From the IMG/VR virus record IMGVR_UViG_3300024262_006558, positions 186,001 through 250,000 of that record: a DNA stretch of 64,000 nt. The stretch is one strand, 5' to 3'. The position numbers and the translations under genes are program-made. How positions within the stretch are numbered: the first letter of the stretch is position 1; every line of letters starts with the position of its first letter. Below are positions 1,841 to 48,419 of the stretch, in pieces. The notes below the pieces were generated by a model. That model was not told where the DNA came from, ran no database searches, and saw only the letters and a list, made by a program, of their open reading frames with translations.

Positions 1841-3916
1841 ATGGGGCTGGGTTTACAAACAATCAATGACAGTGATGATCCTAACGCTGGAAAGGATAAG
1901 ATAAATTATAATTTTGGTATACTTGAAAATTTTTCTCCAAGTGGAATAACAAGCGCAAGCTCAGTTTCTTTTAGCGCAACATCAATTAGTGCTACCACGT
2001 TTTATTCAGGAGCTACAGATTTATCATTACTATTTGGATCAGGCGGGGGCGGAAGCAGTGATATCACAAGAGTGCAAAGCGGTGTAAACACATTCACTGG
2101 CGGGACGGATAATTTACCAACGATAAATGTTACTGGATTAACTGTCGACAACATAACGGTTAGCGGAGAGTCATCTTTCACTTCATTAAGTGCGACTACT
2201 TTGTATTCTGGGAGCACAGATTTATCTGACTTGTTCCAAGTCGCTGGAGGTTCAAGTTCACCATTTAGCGGTAATCCAACATTTGGGTCTATTATGGCTA
2301 TTAGTGGAAGCAGTATAGCAACTGGTATAAACTCATTCGCTTCAGGCTATGAAACTATAGCTTCAGCTAACTTCTCTAACGCTGAAGGTTATAGAACTAC
2401 AGCATCAGGTTTAGGATCTCACACCGAAGGTAATACTACAACAGCTTCTGGTTATCAAGCTCATGCTGAAGGTAACAGTACAATAGCGTCAGGTAATAGA
2501 GCTCACGCTGAAGGTCAAGGTACACTAGCATCAAGTGACACAGCTCACGCTGAAGGGTTAAATACAAGAGCAATAAATGCTCCAGGTGCTCACGCTGAAG
2601 GGGTTTCAACCCTAGCTTCTAATTATTGTTCTCACGCTGAAGGTGGATCAACATCAGCTACTACTGCATTTGCTCACTCAGAAGGTAGACAAACTTTAGC
2701 TTCAGGGCTTGCGTCTCACGCTGAAGGTTATCAGACTATAGCATCTAACTCATCTTCACACGCTGAAGGTCAACAAACAACTGCCTCTGGTATTTTCTCA
2801 CACGCTGAAGGACTCGGTTCTGATGCAACTGGATCACAATCTCACGCAGAAGGGCAAGATACCTTAGCATCAGGAAACACATCTCACGCTCAGAACTTTG
2901 GCACTGTTGCTGGAGGTGTATTTTCTCACGCAGAAGGTTATAGAACAACAACTACAGGAAATAATTCTCACGCTGAAGGGTGGAATACGTTAGCTATTGG
3001 CGTAACTTCTCACGCTGAAGGGTATAGAACTCAAGCTTCTGGGCAATACTCTCACTCTCAAGGGTGGTTAACATCAGCTACAACACAAGCCTCTCACGCT
3101 GAAGGGTATAAAACATTATCTTCAGGGTCAAGATCTCACGCTGAAGGAACAAGGACTACAGCTATTGGAGGGGCTTCACACGCTGAAGGTTCATACAATA
3201 GAGCTATAGGGCAAAATTCTCACGCTGAAGGTAATGACACTGAATCCATAGGCGTTTCTTCTCACGCTGAAGGTTTTTCCACATCATCTACAGGTGATCA
3301 TTCTCACGCTGAAGGTGGACAAACGGTTTCCCACGGATTCCGATCACACGCTGGTGGAGATAATTCAATAGCATCTGGGATAACATCTTTTGTTCATTCA
3401 CTTAGATCCACCGTTGAAGCTAATTATGCTGTTATACTTGGTGGCAGCAACAATAGACTAACATCTTTAGCTACTGGATCTACCATACTTGGAGGCACTG
3501 GAATAACTGGTGAAACGGAGAATACTGTATATGCTCCTAATTTTTATGTTCAAGGATCAGTTTCAGCTACTACGTTTTATTCTGGATCTACGGATTTGGG
3601 AGATTTAATTTTAAGCACAAATTCTATATTACCTTTAGTCAATGTTACCGCTGGAGACTCTTTAACGGCGACAACATCAAATAATGTAATAGCAATTAAT
3701 ATAGCGTCTGGAGTTACATACTCACTGCCTGATAATCCAGCACATGGACAATCTTTTGTTATAAAAGACGCCTCTGGACTAGCATCATCAAACAATATAA
3801 CTGTAGACGTTGTCGGAGGCGCCTATCTTATTGATGGCGCCGCTCAAGAGGTTTTGAGCGTTAATTATGAATGGGCTAAATATGTGTTTAACAGTATTCA
3901 ATATCTAAAGATATAA
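1841..3916 (+). CDS. Tail fibre/adhesin-like protein with YadA-head-like 14-aa SHAEG repeats
   Basis: More than 20 tandem xSHAEGxxTxAxG repeats; S/T/G-rich; C-terminal LPDNPAHGQSFVIKDASG fibre-type segment. Confidence 0.7.
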   Translation: MGLGLQTINDSDDPNAGKDKINYNFGILENFSPSGITSASSVSFSATSISATTFYSGATDLSLLFGSGGGGSSDITRVQSGVNTFTGGTDNLPTINVTGLTVDNITVSGESSFTSLSATTLYSGSTDLSDLFQVAGGSSSPFSGNPTFGSIMAISGSSIATGINSFASGYETIASANFSNAEGYRTTASGLGSHTEGNTTTASGYQAHAEGNSTIASGNRAHAEGQGTLASSDTAHAEGLNTRAINAPGAHAEGVSTLASNYCSHAEGGSTSATTAFAHSEGRQTLASGLASHAEGYQTIASNSSSHAEGQQTTASGIFSHAEGLGSDATGSQSHAEGQDTLASGNTSHAQNFGTVAGGVFSHAEGYRTTTTGNNSHAEGWNTLAIGVTSHAEGYRTQASGQYSHSQGWLTSATTQASHAEGYKTLSSGSRSHAEGTRTTAIGGASHAEGSYNRAIGQNSHAEGNDTESIGVSSHAEGFSTSSTGDHSHAEGGQTVSHGFRSHAGGDNSIASGITSFVHSLRSTVEANYAVILGGSNNRLTSLATGSTILGGTGITGETENTVYAPNFYVQGSVSATTFYSGSTDLGDLILSTNSILPLVNVTAGDSLTATTSNNVIAINIASGVTYSLPDNPAHGQSFVIKDASGLASSNNITVDVVGGAYLIDGAAQEVLSVNYEWAKYVFNSIQYLKI
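2370..3360 (+). repeat. 42-bp coding tandem repeat (TCTCACGCTGAAGG core)
   Basis: Core recurs every 42 nt in frame within 1841..3916. Confidence 0.85.
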
Positions 3917-3919
3917 AAT

Positions 3920-3952
3920 AAAAAAAGGGAAGTTAATAACTTCCCTTTTTTT
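3920..3952. terminator. Bidirectional intrinsic terminator
   Basis: AAAAAAAGGGAAGTTA-a-TAACTTCCCTTTTTTT between convergent genes. Confidence 0.8.
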
Positions 3953-4779
3953 TATTTTTCTCCAGCCATCTCGTTTATATCTGCATACTCTCTATCTATC
4001 CATTCACATACTTGCGGAGTGAGAATTTTTTCCCAATTTGGTCTCTTGTATTCTATTTCTTGCCTAATCTTGTGAAGCTCCATACCATGAACGGTATCAT
4101 CCTCTTTAGTTATTTGCTGAACATTGCTTGGATCATAGTCAAAGTGAGGCAAGCCTAATTGATCATGTAATTGATTCATAACTACATTAGTATTAGTTGT
4201 TAGCTCTTTATAGGGAAGTATTATTAACCTATCAGACACCCCTCTATCCAAAGCGTCTCTTGTTCTAGTTATTGAAAGACCAGCCACCGCCTTTACATCA
4301 AGCAGCTGCCTTGCTCTACCACCTATACTTTGAAGATCGTAGAAAGCATTTCCAGAAGGGCTTGGTTTTGTCAAATGATTCTCTCTATGTTTCATTTCAA
4401 AAGAAGCCACAATAGCTTTAACATCTCTTACAGTTACAATAACTTTAATCGGTCTTTGCAAGATATCTTCTAGTAATTCTATATTTGCAATCCACCCTCT
4501 GGATTTATCAAATACAATTTTGTTATTCAAAAACTCTTCAGAATAAAATCCCCACATCATAGCCTTCATAGCGTTTATAATACGAGGCTCTACAGTCTTT
4601 AGACCTTGAGCTTTAAAGCTAATATGGTTTTGCCAGCTATTTCTCAAAGTAACTATCAGCTCTATGAGATCATTAGTGGGTGTAACGTGATTTTGAGAGT
4701 TTTGACCCAATAGATTCATGAGAAGTGTGGAACCACTTCTAGGAAGGCCAGAAACAAAGAATATTGGTAAGTTTTTCAT
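3952..4779 (-). CDS. Sulfotransferase family protein
   Basis: N-terminal PAPS-binding loop SGLPRSGSTLL; DKSRGW; VRDVKAIVASF. Confidence 0.85.
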   Translation of the reverse strand: MKNLPIFFVSGLPRSGSTLLMNLLGQNSQNHVTPTNDLIELIVTLRNSWQNHISFKAQGLKTVEPRIINAMKAMMWGFYSEEFLNNKIVFDKSRGWIANIELLEDILQRPIKVIVTVRDVKAIVASFEMKHRENHLTKPSPSGNAFYDLQSIGGRARQLLDVKAVAGLSITRTRDALDRGVSDRLIILPYKELTTNTNVVMNQLHDQLGLPHFDYDPSNVQQITKEDDTVHGMELHKIRQEIEYKRPNWEKILTPQVCEWIDREYADINEMAGEK

Positions 4780-11644: not shown

Positions 11645-12757
11645 ATGCAGCAATTCGTAGATTTAATTACCCGTATAATCAAAGAAGGCACTAGGAAAGA
11701 AGATAGAACTGGTACAGGGACAGTTTCTATATTCGGCCATCAATCCACATACAATATGGACAAAGGCTTTCCTTTACTTACTCTAAAAAGAACTTATTAT
11801 AGAGGGATATTCCATGAACTTTTATGGTTTTTAAATGCGGTTCCAGAAAAATATAAAGACTTTGGAAATACTAACATCAGATATTTAGTAGATAATAAAG
11901 TCAATATTTGGAATGAATGGCCTCATAAAAACTATAATGAAAAAAATCCAGACAGCCAACTAACTTTGGAAGAGTATGTTGATAAAATTAAAAATGATGA
12001 CGACTTTGCTTTTGAATGGGGCGATCTTGGCCCAGTTTATGGCAAGCAGTGGACAGCTTGGGAGCCTCCAGCTTGGAACATTGAAGGTGGCTTAATAAAC
12101 CAAGTTGACAAAGCGATTGATCAACTTAAGAACAATCCAGATTCAAGAAGAATTATTGTATCAGCTTGGAACCCTGGAGAAATTGATCAGATGCTATTGC
12201 CTCCATGTCATGCATTCTTTCAATTTTGCGCAGAGACATTATCTGATAACGAAAGATATCAGCTATACAATGTTAAAATGAGGGACATGGGCTGGGCTCT
12301 TAGAGCTTTTGATGATATACCAGAAGATGAGTTATCTCTGCATGAAATACCATCAAGAAGGTTAAATCTTCAATTATACCAAAGAAGCGCTGATGTATTC
12401 CTGGGAGTACCATTCAACATAGCTTCATATGCTTTATTGCTGCATATGGTGTCTCAAGTTGTTAATATGAAGCCAGGCAATTTTGTTCACACCATGGGCG
12501 ATGCTCACCTATATATGAATCATGAAAATCAAGTCAATGAATTCTTAAGTAGAACTGATAAGGATTGTGAAAAGGTTTTCGATTACTTCAACAACCCTAA
12601 AACAGCAGAGTCTATGCTAGGGTCTTATGAGGGACCTCCCTTGCCAACGCTTAAGCTAGATGATTCTATTAAAAATATTGAAGATTTTAGAATGGAGCAT
12701 ATAAACGTTGTAGATTATACTCCTTTAAAAACAATTAAAGCTCCAGTTGCAATTTAA
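11645..12757 (+). CDS. thyA: Thymidylate synthase
   Basis: DRTGTGT, GDLGPVYGKQW, SRRIIVSAWN, LPPCH, YQRSADVFLGVPFNIASY, GDAHLY. Confidence 0.97.
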   Translation: MQQFVDLITRIIKEGTRKEDRTGTGTVSIFGHQSTYNMDKGFPLLTLKRTYYRGIFHELLWFLNAVPEKYKDFGNTNIRYLVDNKVNIWNEWPHKNYNEKNPDSQLTLEEYVDKIKNDDDFAFEWGDLGPVYGKQWTAWEPPAWNIEGGLINQVDKAIDQLKNNPDSRRIIVSAWNPGEIDQMLLPPCHAFFQFCAETLSDNERYQLYNVKMRDMGWALRAFDDIPEDELSLHEIPSRRLNLQLYQRSADVFLGVPFNIASYALLLHMVSQVVNMKPGNFVHTMGDAHLYMNHENQVNEFLSRTDKDCEKVFDYFNNPKTAESMLGSYEGPPLPTLKLDDSIKNIEDFRMEHINVVDYTPLKTIKAPVAI

Positions 12758-12793: not shown

Positions 12794-13597
12794 ATGGGAA
12801 AAACCTTACAAGAGAAAATAGATGGAATAGATCTAAAGATACCAGAAGAGTTCTTTGTTTCTGAAAAGCAAGATAAGATTGACTTTACTCTATTAGAAGG
12901 GAAGACTCTCGTAGGTCTTCTTGGATATGCTAAAAGCGGAAAGGATACTGTTGCTGAAACTCTTGAGTCTAAGTATGGATATCATAAAATAAAATTTGGA
13001 GACGCTCTTAAGCAGGTTTTAAATAAGAATTTTAAAGAAATTGTATTTGAAGACCTTCAAAAAAAAGGTGAATATATCGAATTTAGTCAAGTAGACTTTT
13101 TAATAGAGGAAGATCGTATAATAAAAGAGAAGCTGAGACCTTATATGATATGGTTAGCTGAAACTCTGAGGCGAGAAAATGGGGTTCACTTCTGGACCAA
13201 CAAAGCTCTTAAGTCTATTGGTCCAGAAATAAAAAAAATTGTTGGCGCTGACTTTAGGCGAACTGATGAATTGGACTTCTTTAGAGGAAACTACAACTCT
13301 CTTAAAAGAGAGTGGAATAGCAGCTCTAAAGCTGGAATGCTTACTAAAAGTGTTAGAGATGAATTTGAAGCAAGAGAACTTGAAGTTAAAGGTTATTCAA
13401 CAAATCTATTCCTTGTTAATCAATATGGTTTAGAAGAAGAGGATTCTCTAACTAAAGACACTATTTTATTAGCATTGCATGAGTGGTTAATTGATGGAAC
13501 AGTAAATGTAGACTCAAGAATACCAGATGAGGGAGAGTATAGAAAAATCTTCATGGAGAACACCGTGACAAATCTTGCTCTAGATCACAAACTTTAA
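12794..13597 (+). CDS. Deoxynucleoside monophosphate kinase-like protein
   Basis: P-loop GYAKSGKDT, KFGDALK, ADFRR; adjacent to thyA. Confidence 0.75.
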   Translation: MGKTLQEKIDGIDLKIPEEFFVSEKQDKIDFTLLEGKTLVGLLGYAKSGKDTVAETLESKYGYHKIKFGDALKQVLNKNFKEIVFEDLQKKGEYIEFSQVDFLIEEDRIIKEKLRPYMIWLAETLRRENGVHFWTNKALKSIGPEIKKIVGADFRRTDELDFFRGNYNSLKREWNSSSKAGMLTKSVRDEFEARELEVKGYSTNLFLVNQYGLEEEDSLTKDTILLALHEWLIDGTVNVDSRIPDEGEYRKIFMENTVTNLALDHKL

Positions 13598-14016
13598 TTT
13601 GAAGGACCTAATGGGGCATTAGCTCTATTAGGTGTAACTTCATTAACATTATTAATAGCCGTTCTAATACCTAATTGTTTTTCTATAATTAGCTTTACAT
13701 CACCTTTTATTTCACCCTGCTCTTTAACGATTTCTAGAATGTTTTGATTCATAGGGTTTACTATCACAAGAATATCATTTTTAAAAGACTTCAAGTCCTC
13801 TCTTATCTCTAATCTAACCTCCTTTTTACTGGCTTCCATATCTTTCTTTAGCTGAGCTCTCTCTGAGCTAGAATTAAAGTAAAACCATGTAAATAATAAA
13901 CTTAGCAATCCAAGAAAGCCTCCTAATATCCAAATAGCCACTTTAACGGTTAGCGTGATCTTTGTAGATTCTCCAATGACTCTAGTTCCTATTTGTAGTT
14001 CTTTATCGTCAGACAT
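13594..14016 (-). CDS. Membrane protein with coiled coil (holin/hemolysin-like?)
   Basis: Single TM segment then coiled coil; ATG at 14016 avoids overlap with the upstream gene. Confidence 0.5.
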   Translation of the reverse strand: MSDDKELQIGTRVIGESTKITLTVKVAIWILGGFLGLLSLLFTWFYFNSSSERAQLKKDMEASKKEVRLEIREDLKSFKNDILVIVNPMNQNILEIVKEQGEIKGDVKLIIEKQLGIRTAINNVNEVTPNRANAPLGPSN

Positions 14017-14018
14017 GC

Positions 14019-14453
14019 TTAATAAGGGACTGGTGATGTATATGTAACTTTCACAATGGAGTTTGAATTTATACTCCAATAAGAAGCATAATAATAATCT
14101 CCCGTGACTAGCATCCAATTAGGGCCTATAACTATACCGTCTATTGTAATAGTGTAAGAAGGGATGTAAGTACCCATCTTTACCCATTGATTGTTTATTT
14201 TATTATAACTTTGATTGTAAAAATATACGTAATAGTAGTATACATAAATATACTTACCATTATAAAACATTTCATATGTATTTACAGATCTATCTACCTG
14301 ATAAGCTGTTTGCCCATACGAGTAAGAGTTAACCCAATTCTTTGAACCCTGAACTTTAGAAATATAGCGTACAGTGGATACTTGAGCATGGCCCAAGAAT
14401 CCTATAAAAAATAACGCTATAAATAATATAAGTTTAGAGATCGTAGATTTCAT
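14019..14453 (-). CDS. Secreted Tyr-rich hypothetical protein
   Basis: Signal peptide MKSTISKLILFIALFFIGFLGHA|Q. Confidence 0.6.
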   Translation of the reverse strand: MKSTISKLILFIALFFIGFLGHAQVSTVRYISKVQGSKNWVNSYSYGQTAYQVDRSVNTYEMFYNGKYIYVYYYYVYFYNQSYNKINNQWVKMGTYIPSYTITIDGIVIGPNWMLVTGDYYYASYWSINSNSIVKVTYTSPVPY

Positions 14454-16683
14454 CGTATCCGTTATTATGTGTAAAGTCTTTAATTAGCATGCCAGCAACA
14501 GAGTCAGCCTCATTTTCAATTTCACCCCCAATGTTCTGAACCTCTTCACCTAAGTTAAATTTACCTATTTCAATCTGTCTATTGTGAGTGAGTTCATGCG
14601 CTATAGATCTGCAAATATCAACTAGTGATCTACCTTGATAATTTATATGGTTGGAGTTCTCACTTGGAACATAAGACGCAGTAGTTTTAATGTACTCATC
14701 TCTTCCGTTTCTAAAGTGTATAGTAATAGGATTTTCCATACCAACCTTCAAACAGACAAATTCAACGAAATCCCTTAACAGCTCCATCTTTTCAGGAGTC
14801 ATCCCATCCCCTTTGTGGAAGAAAATAGAATTATCTCCATTTTTGGAATTATATTTAACCAATCTATCAACAGGTATATTTGGATTAAGAGGCCAATTTA
14901 TTCTTTTCCCACTAGGAGCAGAGTAAGACATCTCAGCACCCTCAAGCACTAAAGCTTGCGGTTTAAATTTGCTTGCATATCTTTTACCCATTCCTGGCTT
15001 AAGATAAGCTATAGTAATGTGCGGTTGATAGTTAGGGTAATCATTACTATGAGAAAACCCTTCCTTCATCACACCATTTAATCTATGAAGCTCTTTCCCA
15101 TCCACATCAAATTTTAGGACGTCATATTTATCCCCCTCGAAGCAAGACGCTCCTTTAACTTCTATTTTAAGAGGCCCTGAGCAATTATCTCTAGTTTTCT
15201 GTATAATGTCTTCGTAATCTATTTCATCATCGTGAAAGCCAAATAAAACAGTTGCATGAGGATCTTTTTCTAAGCCGAATCCAGGCTCATCTTCATACAG
15301 ATCTCCCTCTTCTATTTTAGATAATATTTTACTATCCCATGTAGGAATATCCATTTGCAACATTAAACACCCTTTTTCATACTTGTGATTTACACTACTC
15401 TCATTTAGATCTCCAGATTCCATTCTATCAAGCTTGTCGTAATATTTAGGATCTTCTAATAAATGATCTAAAGCTATTTCTTTAGCCATAGCCGCATCAT
15501 CAGTGTGCTCCATTTCTACTTGAACCCCTTTGTGTAATTGCGATATTATTTCCCATGAAGAAACACCATGCTTATTTGCGATGTCCTCATAAGTCATATC
15601 ATCAGATAAACCTCCAGGCACCATGTCTTCTTTAACTTTCTCTGGAAGCCCATCGTGATCGGTAGACGCGAAGTCTTCCACATCTTTATGACTCATATCT
15701 TTAGCCGCTTTACGAGCCTTTTTAGATGCTTTACTTAAAGGTATTTCTCCTAATTGTAAACCTCTAACTATACCAAAGAATCTCTGCTGAGATTTACTAC
15801 TTGATTCTTCATCTATAAGTTTAAACGCTTCAGCAAAGTCTTCATCTAAAGTGAGAGACTTGTCGAAAGAATTTATTTTAGTATCGGACAATTTTTCAAG
15901 GTAACCGCTATTTCTCAATGTTTTGAACGCGAGGTTTTCAACTGAGTATTCTCCCGCTGAAGAAAGTCCAGTTTGCCTCATTTTCCTAATCTTCTCTTTG
16001 ATAGCATCTGATTCACTCTCTCTTTCTTCATCATCTTTGATTCCAGCAAGAGCGTTAATCATATCAGCCATCATTTGAGATTTTTTTCTTACAGATTCTT
16101 TGTCTACTTTGACGTTTTCTTTCTCTGGCTTAACTATCCAGTCATCATTTTTAATAGAATAAATTCCAGAAGAATGATGCTCTTCTCTTTCATCCTGCAC
16201 ATACAATTCAACATCATGCCCTTTAACAGTGATGTCATGCTTCAAACCCCATAGAGCTTTCTGTATATCAAAGTAATCTCTTACAAATTCAGTGTTATCA
16301 TCGACATCATCAAAGTTGATGACGATGTGCAAGTCAATATCACTCGTATCAGTCCAGTTGTAGTTTGCCATACTACCAGTAAAGATAACGTCTTTAATAG
16401 GAGCTTTAAGACCAATGGATTCAATAAATTTAACAGCAATCTTCTTTAGCTGCTTTCTAATTTCAGACTTTAATTTATCTTGGTCATCCCATAATTCTCT
16501 ATTAAGATCATCCTGCACCCCAGAAGGCACAAACTTTTCTAAAGATTTATCAACAGCCTCACCAATCTCTTTTTTACTTTCACCTCTTCCTTTGTGGAAT
16601 CTGTAATAAGGATTATTTCTCCATTTAGCGCTATTAGCTGAAGCTAATGACATGTTTTTTGGTTGTTCGTTAATTCCAGGCAT
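14434..16683 (-). CDS. Multidomain protein: Pol-beta-like nucleotidyltransferase + DUF3008-like + DUF5661-like + 2H phosphoesterase + HExxH domain
   Basis: GSMANYNWTDTSDIDLH; SKSQQRFFG..DFASTDHDGLPEKV; VEMEHTDD..EIALDHLLEDPKYY; PHATV and PHITI; AHELTH. Confidence 0.75.
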   Translation of the reverse strand: MPGINEQPKNMSLASANSAKWRNNPYYRFHKGRGESKKEIGEAVDKSLEKFVPSGVQDDLNRELWDDQDKLKSEIRKQLKKIAVKFIESIGLKAPIKDVIFTGSMANYNWTDTSDIDLHIVINFDDVDDNTEFVRDYFDIQKALWGLKHDITVKGHDVELYVQDEREEHHSSGIYSIKNDDWIVKPEKENVKVDKESVRKKSQMMADMINALAGIKDDEERESESDAIKEKIRKMRQTGLSSAGEYSVENLAFKTLRNSGYLEKLSDTKINSFDKSLTLDEDFAEAFKLIDEESSSKSQQRFFGIVRGLQLGEIPLSKASKKARKAAKDMSHKDVEDFASTDHDGLPEKVKEDMVPGGLSDDMTYEDIANKHGVSSWEIISQLHKGVQVEMEHTDDAAMAKEIALDHLLEDPKYYDKLDRMESGDLNESSVNHKYEKGCLMLQMDIPTWDSKILSKIEEGDLYEDEPGFGLEKDPHATVLFGFHDDEIDYEDIIQKTRDNCSGPLKIEVKGASCFEGDKYDVLKFDVDGKELHRLNGVMKEGFSHSNDYPNYQPHITIAYLKPGMGKRYASKFKPQALVLEGAEMSYSAPSGKRINWPLNPNIPVDRLVKYNSKNGDNSIFFHKGDGMTPEKMELLRDFVEFVCLKVGMENPITIHFRNGRDEYIKTTASYVPSENSNHINYQGRSLVDICRSIAHELTHNRQIEIGKFNLGEEVQNIGGEIENEADSVAGMLIKDFTHNNGYDEIYDL

Positions 16684-17177
16684 TAGTTCATAAATATTTT
16701 GTATCTATCCTTTGGAGTGTTCTCCAGGGAATTAATTGCTTTCATTGTGTTCTTACCCAATTTCTCTCTCAATTCTTCAATGGAGTTATTATAGTCATAA
16801 ACTATGTCTTTTAGGTTTTCGATAATGCTAACATACATGTTTATTTTTTCAGCCAAATCCTCAGCTACATACATGTCTTGCTCAGAAACATCGTCTATAG
16901 TAAGAAAGTGGTCCATATAATTTTGAACAGCTTTAAATGGCTCACCTAAAGCTGTTAACTTTTCATCATACCCCTTTAGTTTTGAGGATGCATCCCCTCC
17001 AATACCTATTTTAAATATGCCTTGCTCTATCTTCTTGAGATCTTCGTGATTATCTTCGATTAGCTTGTTAAATACATTAACCTTTTCTTTCAGGTCTGGG
17101 TATTTCTCTAAAAGCTCTTCTAACTCGAACAGTTTGGCAATTTCTTCTTTGATGATTTTTTTTATACTAAGACTCAT
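16683..17177 (-). CDS. Hypothetical coiled-coil protein with N-terminal KKIIKEE motif
   Basis: MSLSIKKIIKEEI. Confidence 0.65.
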   Translation of the reverse strand: MSLSIKKIIKEEIAKLFELEELLEKYPDLKEKVNVFNKLIEDNHEDLKKIEQGIFKIGIGGDASSKLKGYDEKLTALGEPFKAVQNYMDHFLTIDDVSEQDMYVAEDLAEKINMYVSIIENLKDIVYDYNNSIEELREKLGKNTMKAINSLENTPKDRYKIFMN

Positions 17178-21148: not shown

Positions 21149-21667
21149 ATGTTAAAAAAGATTATAAGTGGAGGTCAGACTGGGTCTGACCTAGGAGGAT
21201 TAGAAGCAGGTAAAGATCTCGGTCTAGAAACTGGCGGAACGGCTCCAGAAGGCTGGCTGACAGAACTAGGCCCACAAAAAGAGCTACTACAACAGTATGG
21301 TTTATCTGAAGGTCCAAAGGATGTTAGAAAGTTTGTTAAAAGAACAATGCTGAATGTAGATTGTTCTGATGCTACTATTGCATTTAGATTGAAGAAAAGC
21401 CCTGGCACTGATAAAACCATTGGATATGCTCACAATAAAAAGTGGGAATATCCAAATGACATCTTGGAAACAAGCAATTATAAACCTATATTTGTCATCC
21501 ATAATCTCAACGCTGTGCCTATTAGAAAAATTGCCGCATGGTTAATAGATAATAAAGTTAAAGTTCTTAACGTTGCTGGGCATAGGGAAAAATCTTGGCC
21601 AGGACTACAACAGATAACAAGAGAAATAATTAAAGCAATATATTATGAGCAAAAATCTAAAGCCTAA
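21149..21667 (+). CDS. SLOG-superfamily protein ('putative molybdenum carrier' family)
   Basis: KKIISGGQTGSDLGGL, TGGTAPEGW, RTMLNVDCSDAT, VLNVAGHRE. Confidence 0.8.
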   Translation: MLKKIISGGQTGSDLGGLEAGKDLGLETGGTAPEGWLTELGPQKELLQQYGLSEGPKDVRKFVKRTMLNVDCSDATIAFRLKKSPGTDKTIGYAHNKKWEYPNDILETSNYKPIFVIHNLNAVPIRKIAAWLIDNKVKVLNVAGHREKSWPGLQQITREIIKAIYYEQKSKA

Positions 21668-23162
21668 AGATTGTGCAGTTCCATCCGCTTCAGCACCTAT
21701 GGTAGCTGATGCATATGAATACACTATGGCGGAAGCCAATATTGTAAACCAAATAACAGGAATCAAGTCTATATTCAACGCAGCCTTAAGAGGTATGCCA
21801 ACTAATAAGGTAGTTGGAGAGTTTGAGCATAAAGGTATTAAATACCCTGAGTTGCAAAAAAGGAGCTTCATGATTAATTGCGGACTTGAACAAGTACTAG
21901 CTCTTGTGACAAACACAACCCCAGAGGGGATGGTAGTCATAAAGAATTATTTCAAAGACATTCTAGGGAACAAAAATCAAGAATTTCTAGATTGGATTGA
22001 GCAATTTTCATTCAAAGGCGATTTATATGCCATGGATGAAGGGATTCCATTTTTCTCTCATGAGCCACTAGTTAAAGTGGTTGATGATTTTGAGAGCGGT
22101 CAATTATTCGAAAGCGTAATACTATCGGTCCTTAATAGGGAAATAAATGTAGCAACTACCGCACATGACGTTTATAATGCATGCAAGGATAAGGTGTTGC
22201 TGGAAGGAGCTTCTCGTAGAGCAATGTCTCAACAGGATGCGATAATGCTGTCAAGAGCAGCTTTAATAGGCGGATTCACAGCAACTTCAAATGTGGGATA
22301 TGGAATTCAAAACGATACAAAAGTAGGGGGTACTCACGGCCATTCTTACGTATTGCTTTATGGAAGCGAATACGAAGCTTTTACAGCGCAAGCAAAACTG
22401 CATGGCGATAACACCACTTTCCTTTTAGATACTTATGGAAACGTCAAGAGAGCCATGTTTATAGCGCTTATAGTAGCGGAAGAGCAAGGTTTAAACCATT
22501 GGAAGTACAGATTAGATAGCGGAGACCTACTAAAGCAAGCTATATGGATCCATAGCGCTATGAAAAAGTGCAATTTCAAAAGGAATCAATACGACATTGT
22601 AGCTAGTGATGATCTTAATGCGGGTAAAATCGCAGCAATAGAAGCTGGCGGAGGGGATATTGCATCATATCTAATGGGCACATTTCTAAGTATTCAATCG
22701 AAAGGTCCAGGTATTGTATTCAAGCTTACAGCAAGGGAAGGTGAAGAAGGTAGATGGATTCCTACAGCTAAGTATTCAGAGAACCCAGCAAAATCAACTA
22801 TTGGAGGAGATCTTCAAATTTACAGAATAGAAGGGTCTGATGGGTTCTATGTGAAAGACATAATCGCATTAGCTGATGAAGAAATAGGAGGGTTGATTAA
22901 AGAGGGGGAAAAGGCTAAAGGGTTATTGAAGCAAAGGATTCAAGGGGGTAAGTTAATATATCCAATACCTACTATATCTGAAATACAGCAAATAAGAGAT
23001 GAGGAGTTAGCTAAATTCAAAGATATTGAAAACTACCCTGTTTTTAGAAGCAATAAAGTTAAAGATACTCAGGATGAAATAAAGCGAGAGATTGACTCTC
23101 AAAATTCTAAAGTAATTATTCCTGAAAAATTCAGAAAAATATTTGAAGAAGAGTGTAAATAA
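21645..23162 (+). CDS. pncB: Nicotinate phosphoribosyltransferase
   Basis: ADAYEYTM (PncB-type DxYxxTM), EGASRR, ATSNV, GTHGHS, LLDTY, RLDSGDL. Confidence 0.85.
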   Translation: MSKNLKPKDCAVPSASAPMVADAYEYTMAEANIVNQITGIKSIFNAALRGMPTNKVVGEFEHKGIKYPELQKRSFMINCGLEQVLALVTNTTPEGMVVIKNYFKDILGNKNQEFLDWIEQFSFKGDLYAMDEGIPFFSHEPLVKVVDDFESGQLFESVILSVLNREINVATTAHDVYNACKDKVLLEGASRRAMSQQDAIMLSRAALIGGFTATSNVGYGIQNDTKVGGTHGHSYVLLYGSEYEAFTAQAKLHGDNTTFLLDTYGNVKRAMFIALIVAEEQGLNHWKYRLDSGDLLKQAIWIHSAMKKCNFKRNQYDIVASDDLNAGKIAAIEAGGGDIASYLMGTFLSIQSKGPGIVFKLTAREGEEGRWIPTAKYSENPAKSTIGGDLQIYRIEGSDGFYVKDIIALADEEIGGLIKEGEKAKGLLKQRIQGGKLIYPIPTISEIQQIRDEELAKFKDIENYPVFRSNKVKDTQDEIKREIDSQNSKVIIPEKFRKIFEEECK

Positions 23163-23173
23163 ACATTATTATT

Positions 23174-23776
23174 ATGGATAAATTAAATATAAAAAAAGAA
23201 GAAACGGTTTTTGACAATTACTTTCAAATAGTTCAAGCTGATATTGAAGTAGGGAAAGGCGATGGCGCTAGGATTATTAAGCGTTTAAAACTTGACAGGC
23301 CTGACGCTGTATCTGTGTTAATTTTTAATTCTGACACAAATGAGTTTGTTTTGGTAAAACAAAATAGGTATCCTATTGTAGCTAAAAATGGAAACGATCC
23401 AATCTATGAAACACCAGCGGGTATTGTAGATCCAGGTGAAGAGCCAATAGAGGCTGCTATTAGAGAAACTAGGGAAGAGGTTGGGTATGAAGTTAAAGCT
23501 GACAATATGGATCTTTTCCGTGAATACTATTCTGGGGTAGGTTATTCTTCTGAAAGAATTTTTCTTTATTTCACAACTGTCACCAACAAAGATAGAGTGG
23601 AAGAAGGCGGGGGTCTAGAAGATGAAGGGGAATTCCTTGAAGTTATACATGTTTCAAAAGATGAAGTGTTTAGAATGTTAGACACAAATGAGATAGTCGA
23701 TGGTAAAACAATCATTTCTCTTTTCTTTATAAGAACGGCTCTTATGGATGCTGAAATCGAAAATCTAAACGGATAA
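23174..23776 (+). CDS. Nudix hydrolase, ADP-ribose pyrophosphatase family
   Basis: Nudix box AGIVDPGEEPIEAAIRETREEVG; GGGLEDEGE; IVDGKT. Confidence 0.9.
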   Translation: MDKLNIKKEETVFDNYFQIVQADIEVGKGDGARIIKRLKLDRPDAVSVLIFNSDTNEFVLVKQNRYPIVAKNGNDPIYETPAGIVDPGEEPIEAAIRETREEVGYEVKADNMDLFREYYSGVGYSSERIFLYFTTVTNKDRVEEGGGLEDEGEFLEVIHVSKDEVFRMLDTNEIVDGKTIISLFFIRTALMDAEIENLNG

Positions 23777-23780
23777 TAAA

Positions 23781-23984
23781 ATGTCAAACATAACGTTATT
23801 TAGCATGAGTATGGGGGCTTTATGGTCCGCATACTCATGGCTTGTTATTGGCGACTCGTTAGTTTGGGGATGGAAAATTCCAATAGGAATAGTTGTGTGC
23901 GTGATTTCTCAAGCGTTAATTGAGATTTCTTTAAACGGTTTAGGTATTTTAATCCAAATGTTATGGAAAAAAATAAGAAAATAG
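23781..23984 (+). CDS. Small membrane protein
   Basis: Two hydrophobic segments. Confidence 0.55.
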   Translation: MSNITLFSMSMGALWSAYSWLVIGDSLVWGWKIPIGIVVCVISQALIEISLNGLGILIQMLWKKIRK

Positions 23985-24604
23985 GATTATATTTTGGATC
24001 ATTTAACCCAATAACTAATGCTCACATAATGGTATCTTTACAAGCTATAGAGTATAAAAATAAATTCGAATTAGATGAAGTTTGGTTTGTGGTTTCTCCG
24101 CAAAACCCTCACAAGGACCCAATCGATCTCGCCCCTGTAGAAGATAGAGTGAAAATGATAAGGGGTGCAATAGAGGATATAGGTGGCTGGAGTGATGAAA
24201 ATCATCGTTTAAAATGCTGCACTAAAGAGCTTGAGCTTCCCTCACCATCTTACACCCACATTACATTCGAAGAACTTGAAAAAGAGAATCAAGATTGTGA
24301 ATTCGTTATTGTTTGTGGAGCTGATACTTACGACAATATTCCTAAATGGAAATATGGAGAAAGCATTTGGAAAAAATATAACTTTCTTATCGTTGAGAGG
24401 GGTGACAGTGGAAAGGGAGGGTTTTACCGAAAGTCTGGAGATGATTTTATTCCTGGTCATTTTAGCGTTTCAGCATCCCTAGTGAGAGAGCGTTTGAAAA
24501 ACGGATTGAATATAACTCCTCTGGTTTCAGAAACAGTAAAAAAGCACATATTAAATAATAAGCTTTACGTAAGTTCAGCATCAACAAGCAATGAACTTAA
24601 TTAA
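23963..24604 (+). CDS. nadD: Nicotinate-nucleotide adenylyltransferase
   Basis: IGLYFGSFNPITNAH, VWFVVSPQNPHK, PSYT, GADT..KWK, VSASLVRERL. Confidence 0.9.
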   Translation: MEKNKKIGLYFGSFNPITNAHIMVSLQAIEYKNKFELDEVWFVVSPQNPHKDPIDLAPVEDRVKMIRGAIEDIGGWSDENHRLKCCTKELELPSPSYTHITFEELEKENQDCEFVIVCGADTYDNIPKWKYGESIWKKYNFLIVERGDSGKGGFYRKSGDDFIPGHFSVSASLVRERLKNGLNITPLVSETVKKHILNNKLYVSSASTSNELN

Positions 24605-24926
24605 GCCTCATATATTATTTGTAATATCAGCATTCCTATTTAGCACACTGTTCATAGTTGTCTCAGTAACAACTATGACAGCTAATAGTAATATTAAAAC
24701 CTATCACAAAGACAATAAACAATTATTATCACTCTACATAGATGAATATAGTGATAGCTTATATTGCGCAGTAACTGTTGAGCAGATACAGGTTCATATA
24801 ATGTTTCTTAATAGAGTTTATGAAGAAGTTGATGTTGAAAATGCAACAATTGAGTACTTTCTCTCGTTATACGTTATAAGGTACGGATCAACCATATATG
24901 AAGAAGAGCATCAAATAAAAAATTAG
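24591..24926 (+). CDS. Membrane-anchored hypothetical protein
   Basis: N-terminal TM segment. Confidence 0.5.
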   Translation: MNLIKPHILFVISAFLFSTLFIVVSVTTMTANSNIKTYHKDNKQLLSLYIDEYSDSLYCAVTVEQIQVHIMFLNRVYEEVDVENATIEYFLSLYVIRYGSTIYEEEHQIKN

Positions 24927-24932
24927 AATAGC

Positions 24933-26747
24933 ATGAAATTAAAAACAGCAATTAGTCAGATTAAGCCAGTTACTGGAGATATTGATGGGAATACCCATCA
25001 AATAATCACGGACATTAGAAAAGCTATTAATGAAGGCGTTGATATTATCGTTTTTCCAGAATTAGCAATTACTGGATATTGTTGCGGAGCTCTTTTTGCA
25101 CAAAAACACTTCATTCAATATAATCTTGATTTCCTTTACAAAAAAATATTGCCAGAGGTGACTGGCGACCTTATTTGCGTAATAGGTCACGCGTCTTTCC
25201 ACAAAATAGATGAAGATAACCCTTTCGACAAAGGTGTTGAAAATCAAGACTTTGCATTATACAATTCATGTTCAGTCATTCAGAGCGGGGAGATATTGAA
25301 AAAATACAATAAAGTGTTTCTAGCAAATGATGGACATCATGAGGATAGAAAATATTTCACCCCAGGCATTCATAGCGATAATCTAGATGAAAACCCAATA
25401 GGGCTTTCCATTAAAGTCAAAGGTCAATACATACGTCTTAACACGCTTATTTGTGAAGACATATGGCAAAATCCTGAAGTGTATGATTATGCATTTGACT
25501 CAGTACACACGCAAGGTTTCCCATCAGTAACTATCGCATTAAATCATTCTTATTTCTATTATGGAAAAACAAAAGAAAGATTAAAGATTTGTGAAAAGAT
25601 AGCTAATACATTTGGGCATTCGGTTATCTATTGTAATCCAGTGGGGGTCGGAGACATTGTCAAAAACATCATGATATATGATGGAAACAGTTTTGCTATA
25701 GATGGGTTTGGTCAACTAGTATATCAGGCCCCAGCTTTTAAAGAGGAGTTAGGTATATTTAATCTTGACATCAAAAATGCTAATGAAACAATTAAAGAAA
25801 ATCACCCCAGCAAATACGAAGAAATATTTGACGCCCTAGTATTTACTCAAAAAGAATTCTTTAGAGTTTGCGGATTGAAAAGAGCTCAAGTTCACATAAG
25901 TGGCGGCTTAGATTCAGCGGTTGCTGCAGTTATTAGCGTAAAAGCTATGGGGGCTGAAAATTGCTTTTTCATCTCTAATCCAACATCCTTCAATGGCGAG
26001 GAAACTAGGAGGGCAGCTCAAAGTATATCTCAATTCTTAAGAGTTAAGTTGTGGTGGAATCCAACTGGTGAAATAGTTAATCTTATTGAAAGAGTTCATG
26101 AGAAATCTTTCAATGATAAACCTAATCAAACTGGATTAGCATCTATACACGCTGTCTCTAGAACTGTTCAAGGTTTAGCTGCGTCACACTTCTTCTCTAG
26201 CGGTATAGTAGCTGCAGGCAATCATACAGAGATAGTTTTAGGATGGGCTAGTTTCCATGATATAGGTAGCATTGGGGTCATGTCTATAATAGGAGACCTT
26301 ACTAAAGTTGAAGTGTTCGAGTTAGCTAAATATATTAATGAAAGACTTGAATTAGAAGTGATACCTTCAGAACTGTATGATGGAAGAATGAAGCCTGCGG
26401 CTGAATTGCCAGATGCAAATGAAGACCCGTTTGATTACTTTGTGGTAAGCGGTATATGCGCAGAGATTATAAGAAATAAAAAAGGTATTAAAGAATTAAC
26501 CGAAGCATTCAATACTAAAACTTTAACTGAAGAGTTTTTCCCGCTAGACTGGGATAATAAGACCGTTTATGAAAAGCTAACGTTAGAACAATTTAAGAAG
26601 CAGTTAGAGGGATGTTTTCACCTCGCTAGAGTGAGTGTTTACAAAGCCGCTCAAAGTGCTCCAGTTCCATTGATATCTAGATTTAGTAGAGGGTTCTCAA
26701 GTAGAGAGACCCTTATTAATCACTACAAAGGAGATTATAAATTATAA
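24933..26747 (+). CDS. nadE: Glutamine-dependent NAD+ synthetase
   Basis: Nitrilase triad motifs FPELAITGY, YNKVFL, ICED; synthetase motifs SGGLDS, GDLTK, PAAEL. Confidence 0.9.
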   Translation: MKLKTAISQIKPVTGDIDGNTHQIITDIRKAINEGVDIIVFPELAITGYCCGALFAQKHFIQYNLDFLYKKILPEVTGDLICVIGHASFHKIDEDNPFDKGVENQDFALYNSCSVIQSGEILKKYNKVFLANDGHHEDRKYFTPGIHSDNLDENPIGLSIKVKGQYIRLNTLICEDIWQNPEVYDYAFDSVHTQGFPSVTIALNHSYFYYGKTKERLKICEKIANTFGHSVIYCNPVGVGDIVKNIMIYDGNSFAIDGFGQLVYQAPAFKEELGIFNLDIKNANETIKENHPSKYEEIFDALVFTQKEFFRVCGLKRAQVHISGGLDSAVAAVISVKAMGAENCFFISNPTSFNGEETRRAAQSISQFLRVKLWWNPTGEIVNLIERVHEKSFNDKPNQTGLASIHAVSRTVQGLAASHFFSSGIVAAGNHTEIVLGWASFHDIGSIGVMSIIGDLTKVEVFELAKYINERLELEVIPSELYDGRMKPAAELPDANEDPFDYFVVSGICAEIIRNKKGIKELTEAFNTKTLTEEFFPLDWDNKTVYEKLTLEQFKKQLEGCFHLARVSVYKAAQSAPVPLISRFSRGFSSRETLINHYKGDYKL

Positions 26748-29580: not shown

Positions 29581-30444
29581 ATGAAACAACTTAAGATACA
29601 GCACAAAATCTCTAATAGAGACTCAGAGTCAATTAACAAATATTTTACAGAGGTGTCTCAGATTCCAATGATTACAATAGAGGAAGAAAGAATCTTATCC
29701 GAAAAAATACAACAAGGAGATCAATTAGCAAAAAATAAATTGGTTAGCGCTAATCTTCGTTTTGTTATATCTGTCGCTAAACAATATCAAACTGGTAACG
29801 TATCTTTATCTGATGTAATTAATGAGGGCAATCTAGGGTTAATGGTGGCCGCAGAACGATTTGATCACACTAGAGGCTTCAAGTTTATTTCATACGCAGT
29901 ATGGTGGATTAGGCAAAGTATAATTGCATCAATCGACAAAAACAGCAGAGTTGTTAGGCTGCCAGGAAATCGCTCATCACTTCTTAATAAGATAAATCAA
30001 TTTGTAGACCTTAGAGTAAAGGAAACTGGAGAAATTCCAGGTCCAGACGAAATATGTCAACATGTTGAAATAGAGCATAGCACATATATTTTAATCATAG
30101 AAACTTCACTTCCTCACGCGTCTTTAGATAAACAATTGACGGAAGGAGAGTCTTCCACATTAGCTGATGTGATTGAATCTGATCTTTTTGAAGCTCCCGA
30201 CAACGATATAATCTGCGAAGGTAGAGACAAAAGAATAAATAATATGCTTTCTCAACTAAGCGTTCGTGATGCTGAAATAATCACATTAGCATTTGGAATT
30301 GGAGAAACTCAACCATGGACTCTTGAGGCTATTTCTGAAAAGCTAGGCTTATCTAGAGAGCGAGTTAGACAAATAAAAGAGAAGGCAATATCTCGATTAG
30401 GACGAACTCAAGGGTTGAGAAAGAATTATGCTGAATATTTATAA
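29581..30444 (+). CDS. RNA polymerase sigma70 factor (RpoD/RpoS family, Bacteroidota type lacking region 1.1)
   Basis: MKQLKI..NRDSESINKY, ANLRFVISVAKQY, NEGNLGL, GFKFISYAVWWIRQSI, LSRERVRQIKEKA. Confidence 0.92.
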   Translation: MKQLKIQHKISNRDSESINKYFTEVSQIPMITIEEERILSEKIQQGDQLAKNKLVSANLRFVISVAKQYQTGNVSLSDVINEGNLGLMVAAERFDHTRGFKFISYAVWWIRQSIIASIDKNSRVVRLPGNRSSLLNKINQFVDLRVKETGEIPGPDEICQHVEIEHSTYILIIETSLPHASLDKQLTEGESSTLADVIESDLFEAPDNDIICEGRDKRINNMLSQLSVRDAEIITLAFGIGETQPWTLEAISEKLGLSRERVRQIKEKAISRLGRTQGLRKNYAEYL

Positions 30445-47519: not shown

Positions 47520-48419
47520 ATGAAAACGGCTGATATTTACCAAAAAGTTACAGATAGAATTTTAGACCTAATAGATAATGGCGGTAAATTGCCATGGGAA
47601 AAGCCATGGGACTATAATGGTCAGCTACCTTGTAACTATGCAAGTAAGAAGCCTTACAGAGGTATTAATTTAATTATGACTGCATTCGATGAATTTAATA
47701 GTCCTTTTTACTTAACTGCAAATGAGATCAAAAAGCGTAAAGGCTCTTGGAGCGGTAAGGGTACTTTAATAGTATTTTGGAAGTTCTTAAAATTCAAAGA
47801 CAAAGATGATGAAAACAAGTTAAAGACTGTACCAATGTTAAAACATTACTATGTTTGGAATGAAGAACAAATAACGGGTATAGAGTTCAAGCATAACGAT
47901 AAGCATGAAATAAAAGATTTCGGCACAATCAATGAAGTAGAAGACATTTTTGCAAATATGCCTAATAAGCCTTCTATCATTCATGAAGAACAAGACAGAG
48001 CTTGTTATTCTCCAATTGCTGATACTGTAATGATGCCTTTAAAAGGTCAGTTCAAATGTTTAGAGTCTTATTACAAAACATTTGCGCATGAATTAATTCA
48101 TTCTACTGGTCATGAAGACAGATTAAATAGAGATGGTGTTGCAAACTTTGACAAATTCGGTTCACATCAATATTCTAAAGAAGAACTAGTTGCTGAAATG
48201 GGTGCATCTTTTATTATGGGTATGGCTGGATTAGAGTCAACTCAAGAAAATTCAGCATCTTATATTAAAAGCTGGAGAAACAAAATAGCTGGAGATAATA
48301 AGTTAATTATTCAAGCTGCTGGACAGGCTCAAAAAGCGGTGGACTATGTTTTGGGAACTTACAAGGATTACGCTGAAATTGAGAAGGAAAACGATAATTC
48401 AAAAGCAATGGCGGTTTAA
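47520..48419 (+). CDS. ardC: ArdC-like antirestriction ssDNA-binding protein with zincin domain
   Basis: IYQKVTDRI..PWEKPW..YRGIN; AHELIHSTGH..RLNR; YSKEELVAEMGA; NSASYIKSW; AAGQAQKAVDY. Confidence 0.85.
   Translation: MKTADIYQKVTDRILDLIDNGGKLPWEKPWDYNGQLPCNYASKKPYRGINLIMTAFDEFNSPFYLTANEIKKRKGSWSGKGTLIVFWKFLKFKDKDDENKLKTVPMLKHYYVWNEEQITGIEFKHNDKHEIKDFGTINEVEDIFANMPNKPSIIHEEQDRACYSPIADTVMMPLKGQFKCLESYYKTFAHELIHSTGHEDRLNRDGVANFDKFGSHQYSKEELVAEMGASFIMGMAGLESTQENSASYIKSWRNKIAGDNKLIIQAAGQAQKAVDYVLGTYKDYAEIEKENDNSKAMAV

Follow-up and report, generated by a model that had tools for sequence, protein, structure and literature searches.

The 64,000-nucleotide stretch of DNA analyzed here, called the window throughout, covers positions 186001 to 250000 of the IMG/VR virus record IMGVR_UViG_3300024262_006558, and its minus strand carries at 14434-16683 a single intact open reading frame (ORF) of 749 amino acids plus stop in genetic code table 11, whose product we refer to as P0001. 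The parent record is 388,594 bp long, such that it is considered to belong to a jumbo phage, and its G+C content is about 33%. An earlier note made from the letters of this DNA had read the gene as five modules in one chain, and this held up: a nucleotidyltransferase (NTase), the two short modules DUF3008 and DUF5661, a 2H phosphodiesterase and a zincin are all supported by family models or by fold. The positions given there for the motifs were also right (GS103-104 and D115xD117 at about 16333-16377, H476 at about 15256-15258, H555 at about 15019-15021, and H696 at about 14596-14598), and P0001 can be called a polyvalent protein, as had been proposed, since at least two unrelated enzymatic domains lie in one chain and each also occurs alone or recombined elsewhere. 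Among the relatives of P0001 the NTase head and the zincin tail are constant, and the modules between them have been gained or lost repeatedly. The catalytic residues are kept in all three enzymatic domains, which suggests that these are probably active; P0001 probably serves in counter-defence or in the processing of RNA ends.

In IMG/VR the parent record (G000) is classed as a 'provirus' with 100% completeness, and the same protein stands on a 494,080-bp contig in the protein collection; the record may derive, by trimming, from a larger phage contig rather than being an integrated prophage. Searched as a whole protein, P0001 matched its own genome in one place only (100% match at G000:C1:200437-202683), and each of the four modules searched separately (DUF3008, DUF5661, 2H, and zincin) is single-copy in this phage genome. 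The gene used as a nucleotide query had no match in the phage collection.

The nucleotidyltransferase head

AlphaFold models were made of two multi-domain pieces, residues 1-430 and 431-749, and the fold searches were run with these. The first piece was modelled with a predicted local distance difference test score (pLDDT) of 85.4 and disordered linkers at residues 287-294 and 345-356. Its N-terminal region (residues 1-50; 16534..16683, minus strand; pLDDT 39-77) begins at low confidence and continues as a long helix, residues 25-51, packed on the helical bundle of the NTase, and is kept in the nearer relatives only. The Pol-beta-fold NTase core and its helical bundle occupy residues 51-285 (15829..16533, minus strand). 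Family phrog_36119 matches residues 51-279 with an E value of 4.8e-50, and NTP_transf_2 (PF01909) is matched just over its gathering score (E 3.6e-4 to 6.5e-5). G103, S104, D115, D117 and a third acidic residue, E159, are invariant across 112 aligned sequences, and the model places strands at 96-102, 116-122, and 156-164. The GS...DxD motif, the further acidic residue that a neighbouring strand provides, the family model and the fold all assign the domain to the Pol-beta superfamily.

Stand-alone phrog_36119 NTases are found in cyanophages (S-CRM01, S-B68), Lak megaphages, the Maribacter phages Molly and Colly, and huge uncultured phages. They share with P0001 the same core and helical bundle, at 35-43% identity over residues of about 40-290, but are single-domain proteins of about 230-265 residues in whose genomes a 2H domain, if present, is a separate distant gene.

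[quoted passage not shown] Such matches would fit a second-messenger toggle, in which the NTase makes a (cyclic) oligonucleotide like a CD-NTase or OAS and the fused 2H domain degrades that product; synthase-hydrolase fusions are proposed as 'toggles' in passages of a jumbo-phage survey (PMC7824862). We regard this as very improbable, for the CD-NTase matches have template modelling (TM) scores of 0.16-0.26 with root-mean-square deviations above 13 Å, and the NTase occurs without 2H in 42 of the 120 listed relatives described below (a module is called absent where BLAST with P0001's own module did not detect it). The tied VIA rows also contain TENT5, Tailor, TUT1 and PAPD1, and in the wide VIA search, made with the N-terminal model of 430 residues, noise from the helical bundle drowned the signal. 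PADLOC gave weak NTase-like matches and nothing else. Identity with RlaP was rejected: PF10127 had no match at E<=10, and no RNA ligase lies closer than 118 kb.

The helical modules and the linkers

Downstream of the NTase lies the DUF3008 module, residues 296-350 (15634..15798, minus strand; PF11450, E 4.9e-5), modelled as three short helices with pLDDT 86-88; its score on the whole protein is marginal, 23.9 bits against a cut-off of 24, and reaches 28.3 bits in the genome search. The DUF5661 module, residues 367-422 (15418..15585, minus strand; PF18905, E 2.5e-17), is modelled as four helices with pLDDT 91-97. In the literature searched, no publication was found on DUF5661 or DUF3008, nor on BCSR5, the phage whose phosphodiesterase is considered below. 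The description of the linkers as E-rich was only partly true: the linker at 279-295 is acidic (41% Asp plus Glu) and that at 345-366 moderately so (27%), but the one at 423-437 is not (20%), the whole protein having 19%.

The 2H phosphodiesterase domain

Residues 431-603 (14875..15393, minus strand) form a 2H phosphodiesterase domain with the motifs H476xT478 and H555xT557, within a model of residues 431-749 that has a pLDDT of 93.5 and a predicted TM score of 0.87. The family 2_5_RNA_ligase2 (PF13563) matches residues 474-562 with an E value of 3.8e-9 and 37.2 bits against a cut-off of 27 (40.6 bits in the genome search), and the Acb1 family (PF23474) is also over its cut-off (E 1.4e-6; 28.6 bits vs. 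27). H476, H555 and T557 are invariant among 78 sequences and T478 is found in at least 90% of them; W449, Y463 and Y552 are conserved aromatics. Membership of the 2H superfamily thus stands on two HxT motifs, the 2H fold and a family model over its curated cut-off, and the expectation that the HxT region would prove a 2H enzyme was borne out by the model and Foldseek in that the fold is present and the catalytic tetrad intact.

Foldseek placed the penguinpox cyclic GMP-AMP (cGAMP) phosphodiesterase and PDE-9 at the top for this region. In a profile search of solved structures, PDE-9 of phage BCSR5 (9Q2G) was the best match, with an E value of 1.6e-4, followed at a distance by FBB1 Acb1 (E 0.11); phmmer against 7T26 gave E 0.44, and hhalign against T4 Acb1 gave a probability of 58% over 20 columns only. 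The nearest viral models in BFVD are 2H proteins labelled '2'-5' RNA ligase' of Maribacter and Tenacibaculum (Flavobacteriia) phages, at 30% identity and a TM score of 0.84, and Acb1-labelled models rank only 32nd and 46th. The 2H fold with its HxT/HxT tetrad is common to P0001, Acb1 (T4 gp57B, FBB1) and PDE-9 (9Q2G/9Q2Y), which Foldseek matched with E values of 4e-6 to 8e-5, and P0001 and T4 Acb1 have in common 'D-aromatic-x-x-Y-x-P-H-I-T' around the second motif. However, the P0001 domain has about 170 residues and is internal in a chain of 749, whereas Acb1 and PDE-9 are stand-alone proteins of about 150 residues, and the catalytic histidines are 79 residues apart in P0001, 69 in Acb1 (H44/H113) and 73 in PDE-9 (H50/H123).

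The stacking aromatics of FBB1 Acb1 are Y12, W74, F107 and W147, according to the part of its description consulted (PMC9117128), and F107 alone has an aligned aromatic counterpart, Y549. No counterpart of the Acb1 terminal lid or of most stacking residues could be mapped in the 2H domain, which runs on into a beta-hairpin and the zincin, such that a C-terminal lid is not possible as such. The domain is also distant from LigT and Usb1, since its 26.7 bits stay far under the 65.7 bits asked for by the NCBIfam equivalog model, it is only 7-15% identical to its structural matches, and it is phage-encoded and fused. Of the earlier label 'Acb1-like' one part stands, as PF23474 is over its cut-off and PDE-9 is the best solved relative, and another does not, given the higher score of the generic 2H model and the short alignment with T4 Acb1; as judged from its sequence, the domain forms a separate phage clade that is Acb1-like only loosely. 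In the sections of the viral phosphodiesterase survey that we could draw on, PDE-9 cleaves 3'3'-cGAMP and belongs to the same structural group as T4 Acb1, and 13 of the 75 phage 2H phosphodiesterases are multidomain, some with proteases (bioRxiv 10.1101/2025.08.21.671373).

The C-terminal zincin and its hub family

The chain ends in a gluzincin-type zincin, residues 604-749 (14437..14874, minus strand), with H696ExxH700 and E723. H696, E697, H700 and E723 do not vary among 48 aligned sequences, nor among 65 distant multidomain members of the family; R661, R685, D689, S693, N701, Q703, G731 and K735 are further invariant residues in the 48. The modelled order is a helix, three strands, the HExxH helix (687-705) and the Glu helix (721-741), and so the domain has HExxH on one helix, Glu on the next and the zincin fold, which makes it a gluzincin. 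The HExxH domain of the earlier note is therefore a zincin, and of the hub kind found in polyvalent phage proteins. Its fold matches are dominated by the catalytic domains of peptidases (M30, M1, M9, Wss1, SPRTN, LF, thermolysin).

No existing family describes the module well. With the last 150 residues as query, hmmscan at E<=10 returned no relevant family, there being no Pfam model for it, and a profile search with the zincin alignment against solved structures returned spurious UFL1 matches only. The module shares with IrrE/ImmA (Peptidase_M78), SprT/Wss1/SPRTN and the minigluzincins a compact zincin of about 130 residues with HExxH and a downstream Glu, and its neighbours in the ESM Atlas and BFVD are labelled IrrE-N-like or SprT-like; it differs from these families in having no hmmscan match to any of them and an invariant residue set of its own. 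Elsewhere in the window, at 47520-48419 (plus strand), a protein of 299 residues joins ArdC-N (E 6.4e-22) to an MPTase-PolyVal zincin (E 1.1e-33) as a two-domain polyvalent protein of anti-restriction type. It is unrelated in sequence to the P0001 zincin, the hhalign probability between the two being 12%. A complex prediction of the NTase (residues 20-285) with the zincin (604-749) scored 0.01; this is no answer, and evidence for neither side.

When searched against 1.84 billion representatives, the zincin profile found at least 2,706 clusters at 50% identity with E<=1e-3, 960 of them at E<=1e-10. The module stands alone, with about 120-160 residues, or lies N-terminally, C-terminally or internally in proteins of up to 1,877 residues. 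The Pfam partners in 65 multidomain members include Peptidase_M23 (8), 2H (6), DUF5661 (5), PG_binding_1 (3), NTases (3), SLT (2), and DUF3008 (2), together with Fe/Mn superoxide dismutase (SOD), Zeta toxin/AAA_33, RNase_T, PAP2, muramidase and HAD phosphatase. Virus-only clusters of the ESM Atlas hold the zincin alone or fused to SOD, CTP_transf_like or NTP_transf_2, and the Atlas also has the NTase module fused to Zeta toxin. The module is thus a promiscuous hub across phage proteins. Single members show striking combinations: P0223 (1547 residues) has Fe/Mn SOD, zincin and a Zeta-toxin/AAA_33 kinase in one chain, P0201 (798 residues) a HAD phosphatase, a DEDD exonuclease and the zincin, and P0180 (743 residues) the zincin and an M23 peptidase. 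A tblastn search with the 2H and zincin half of P0001 against 50,697 phage records returned matches to 2H only, and none to the zincin at E<=1e-3.

Many of these partners act on nucleotides (NTases, CTP_transf_like, Zeta/AAA_33 kinases, 2H, exonuclease, phosphatases), and one could suppose that the HExxH domain is not a protease but a YbeY-like metal-dependent hydrolase of RNA or nucleotides, a partner to the nucleotide enzymes fused to it. We find this quite unlikely. The metal motif of YbeY consists of three histidines, while HExxH with a Glu on the next helix is the gluzincin peptidase pattern; besides, peptidase catalytic domains dominate the fold matches, and the M23, SLT and SOD partners have no link to nucleotides.

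Fixed ends and an exchangeable middle

A word-indexed protein search restricted to a range of lengths found at least 266 full-length relatives of P0001, and architectures were mapped for the 120 listed. All 120 have the NTase head and the zincin tail. The middle varies: 2H was detected in 78, DUF3008 in 39, and DUF5661 in 4. The commonest arrangement is NTase-2H-zincin (63/120), followed by NTase-DUF3008-zincin (24/120), NTase-zincin with no known module between (17/120), and NTase-DUF3008-2H-zincin (12/120); all five modules occur together in 3/120 and NTase-DUF5661-zincin in 1/120. Pfam scans of the unexplained inserts in P0022, P0085, P0003, P0034 and other relatives found no families. Among the listed relatives identity to P0001 ranges from 46 to 93% in the zincin, 36 to 91% in the NTase and 36 to 77% in the 2H domain, the zincin tending to be the best conserved.

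On a quick FastTree of the concatenated NTase and zincin backbone (117 rows, three N-terminally truncated rows being omitted), the distribution of the modules takes a minimum of 6 gains or losses for 2H and of 11 for DUF3008, and 4 for the four occurrences of DUF5661, each of which is separate. Cargo modules have therefore been gained or lost repeatedly on the NTase-zincin scaffold. The closest listed relative, P0002, gives the clearest case. It is 91-93% identical to P0001 in the NTase and the zincin and its locus is collinear, yet it is without residues of about 354-427 (about 15403-15624 in the window), that is, the DUF5661 module. This clean indel of 74 residues with conserved flanks shows directly that a module was recently gained or lost.

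Translational setting and genomic context

The ATG of the P0001 gene overlaps the TAA of an upstream ORF of 164 codons (16683..17177, minus strand) as TAATG, an arrangement of translational coupling, and the N-terminus is common to P0001 and its relatives from residue 1. At the other end, an ORF of 144 codons (14019..14453, minus strand) overlaps the 3' end of the gene by 20 nucleotides; its product has no family, is rich in Tyr and Asn and has a hydrophobic, signal-peptide-like N-terminus. The two overlaps place the gene within a four-gene block on the minus strand. A further ORF of 174 codons, with a hydrophobic segment and no family, fills together with the 144-codon ORF the stretch 13594-14453 (minus strand) up to the kinase gene described next, and the collinear P0002 locus has equivalents of similar size for both. 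The 164-codon ORF was considered as a conserved partner and rejected, being kept in the nearest lineage only: its sole homologue is the equivalent ORF at the P0004 locus, at 31% identity.

Two small ORFs away from the P0001 gene lies a P-loop gene resembling deoxynucleoside monophosphate (dNMP) kinases (12794-13597, plus strand), and beyond it the gene for thymidylate synthase, ThyA (11645-12757, plus strand). On the other side, 5-10 kb from the gene, a nicotinamide adenine dinucleotide (NAD) salvage block (21645-26747) includes an NAPRTase-like protein with N- and C-domain matches only (21645-23162, plus strand) and a glutamine-dependent NAD synthase made of CN_hydrolase and NAD_synthase (24933-26747, plus strand). 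A link has been drawn between NAD-salvage genes of phages and resistance to defences that deplete NAD. Relatives have NAPRTase, Nudix, NMNAT-like and NadE genes at the same relative position. In the window and six related loci the order is NAD-salvage block, gap, NTase-...-zincin gene, 0-3 small ORFs and then, on the opposite strand, the dNMP-kinase-like gene, with thymidylate synthase beyond in five of the seven loci. The kinase-like gene is 0-3 small ORFs from the NTase-zincin gene in five of the six related loci, and the copy at locus L003 is 40% identical to that of the window. Since the order is kept on contigs of up to about 540 kb, it may simply have been inherited as synteny within a single lineage of very large phages. 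In T4 (locus L012, 13953-15375), acb1 (57B) is one gene away from the dNMP kinase gene 1; the kinase here has only the P-loop region in common with T4 gene 1 (E 1e-4), and the resemblance may be coincidence.

The gap holds a CCA-adding enzyme in four relatives, in one of which it is fused to cREC and in another adjacent to a cREC gene; none was found in the genome of P0001's phage. That genome does encode an Rnl2-type RNA ligase (PF09414, E 1.4e-28), about 118 kb off, with a second, weaker match (G000:C1:319463-319960, 331027-331410). These genes bear on RNA-end repair, in which the 2H domain would open the 2',3'-cyclic phosphate ends that arise when anticodon or tRNA nucleases of the host cut, or trim 3' ends as Usb1 does, and the NTase would add nucleotides to the healed 3' end. 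The idea draws on the presence of the ligase, on the four relatives in which the gene stands 1-2 small ORFs downstream of the CCA-adding enzyme, on the best Pfam and NCBIfam models of the 2H domain, which are those of LigT and RNA 2',3'-cyclic phosphodiesterase, and on an NTase core as similar to the terminal transferases TENT5, Tailor, TUT1 and PAPD1 as to anything. Nevertheless, the ligase is far from the gene, the phage is without a CCA-adding enzyme, the NTase is not RlaP, the shared neighbourhood is conserved lineage-wide and may be inherited, and the zincin is left unexplained. Moreover, 2H is missing in about a third of the family, such that the NTase and 2H are no obligate pair. RNA-end repair, which the earlier note had named as its alternative, is the strongest rival to the reading preferred below; we consider it possible, though somewhat doubtful.

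The same surroundings speak to the proposal that P0001 is packaged in the virion and injected as a polyvalent protein, its zincin cutting the acidic linkers to release separate effectors. Two linkers are indeed disordered and acidic, in other phage proteins the fusion partners of the zincin family include M23, SLT, muramidase and PG-binding domains of the sort usual in virion proteins that are ejected, and capsid packaging with MPTase processing is argued for phage polyvalent proteins in the portion of PMC5512222 used here. But neither here nor in the six related loci is a portal, MuF or head gene adjacent, and no cleavage-site motif or conserved site was found in the linkers. Since the gene lies amid ThyA, dNMP-kinase-like and NAD-salvage genes, this part of the earlier note did not find backing in the context, and we judge packaging and processing unlikely. 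In our view, a zincin better conserved than the NTase and 2H, together with linkers in which no conserved site was found, points more to a fixed substrate outside the protein than to cleavage of itself.

Elsewhere the window also encodes a full-length sigma-70 family factor with regions 1.2, 2, 3 and 4 (29581-30444, plus strand), a PcfJ-like protein (1074-1778), a sulfotransferase (3952-4779), and a protein of 691 residues with YadA-head repeats (1841-3916) whose local G+C is 0.418 against about 0.33.

Proposed function

The reading that we prefer, and hold at about an even chance, is that P0001 is a modular, polyvalent-type effector of a jumbo phage with three active enzymes, of which the 2H domain removes immune signals, the NTase modifies a target and the zincin is a protease. 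Through its HxT/HxT tetrad the 2H domain would cleave phosphodiester bonds independently of metal, through or at a 2',3'-cyclic phosphate, and its most likely substrates would be cyclic or 2'-5'-linked oligonucleotide immune signals of the host. The target nucleotidylated by the NTase would be a different one, namely a protein of the host or the 3' end of an RNA, and the zincin would cut its own linkers or a host protein, such that the modules are uncoupled or activated after synthesis or delivery. Signal degradation is favoured because PDE-9 is the best solved relative, Foldseek puts cGAMP phosphodiesterases at the top and the Acb1 model is over its cut-off, and also because no RNA ligase is adjacent and the NAD-salvage block and the ArdC-N/MPTase protein lie in the same window. 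In the part of the polyvalent-protein survey consulted, 2H domains of polyvalent proteins are never paired with RNA ligases and signal degradation is predicted for them (PMC5512222).

Several results weigh against this reading. The generic 2H model outscores the Acb1 model (37.2 vs. 28.6 bits), with TIGR02258 at E 4.5e-6, and VIA ties CPDase, Usb1, LigT, AKAP18, and Acb1 for the 2H region. According to the available sections of the viral survey, substrate range varies among the structural groups of viral 2H proteins, and some of the groups tested cleaved none of 18 messengers (bioRxiv 10.1101/2025.08.21.671373). With such mixed model scores and a range that depends on the group, the 2H substrate cannot be called from sequence, immune nucleotide signals and RNA 2',3'-cyclic ends both being candidates. 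For the NTase, the models do not allow a subfamily to be singled out from the tied fold matches. The protease activity of the zincin is predicted from its motif and fold, and the domain does not match the MPTase-PolyVal model, PF18818, at E<=10. Head, portal and MuF genes are absent from the immediate surroundings of the gene and of its six related loci, where the context is nucleotide metabolism. Finally, the sole public run matching the gene is a subsurface metagenome, probably the source sample, and no RNA run matched.

The constancy of the two ends in the family allows a broader thought, which we consider improbable: the scaffold of NTase and zincin might serve phages generally as a carrier for cargo, in which a self-activating zincin frees or switches on whatever is inserted between the ends (2H, DUF3008, DUF5661 or unknown modules) and the NTase marks a common host target by nucleotidylation, the wider zincin family doing likewise for SOD, kinases, exonucleases and lytic enzymes. 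If true, this would be an unnamed and very widespread system for the delivery and activation of phage counter-defence enzymes.

Relation to known systems and significance

Returning to the effector reading, its concepts have been described before: there are polyvalent proteins that contain zincin, 2H and NTase domains, and viral 2H phosphodiesterases of more than one domain. Polyvalent proteins, as presented by Iyer, Burroughs, Anand, de Souza and Aravind in 2017, have a zincin hub and carry 2H and Pol-beta NTases among their cargo, at least in the stretches of PMC5512222 considered. P0001 resembles them in having unrelated enzymatic domains in one chain that recur alone or recombined, and in a zincin core that combines a three-stranded sheet with one helix bearing HExxH and another bearing the Glu. 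It differs in that its zincin is not PF18818, unlike their MPTase-PolyVal hub, in that its NTase is a phrog_36119 domain of about 230 residues with a helical bundle, whereas the one presented there is minimal, firmicute and ArdC-linked, and in that it is found among genes of nucleotide and NAD metabolism and not in a portal/MuF or type IV secretion context. In the literature searched we found no description of an NTase-2H-zincin fusion. Nor did we find one of a fixed NTase...zincin scaffold with exchangeable cargo, of the five-module version or of this zincin clade, with its thousands of clusters and no Pfam model, in that literature, which includes PMC5512222 in part.

Work on immune evasion currently pays much attention to viral 2H phosphodiesterases, whose range of substrates is not readable from sequence. 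P0001 offers a defined and, by its motifs, catalytically intact 2H domain that occurs naturally with and without the two flanking enzymes, and its large unnamed family, with at least 266 full-length relatives, fixed ends and an exchangeable middle, amounts to a natural experiment on how domains are shuffled. Should the zincin prove to process or activate its partners, it would provide a testable mechanism for the long-predicted proteolytic maturation of polyvalent phage proteins.

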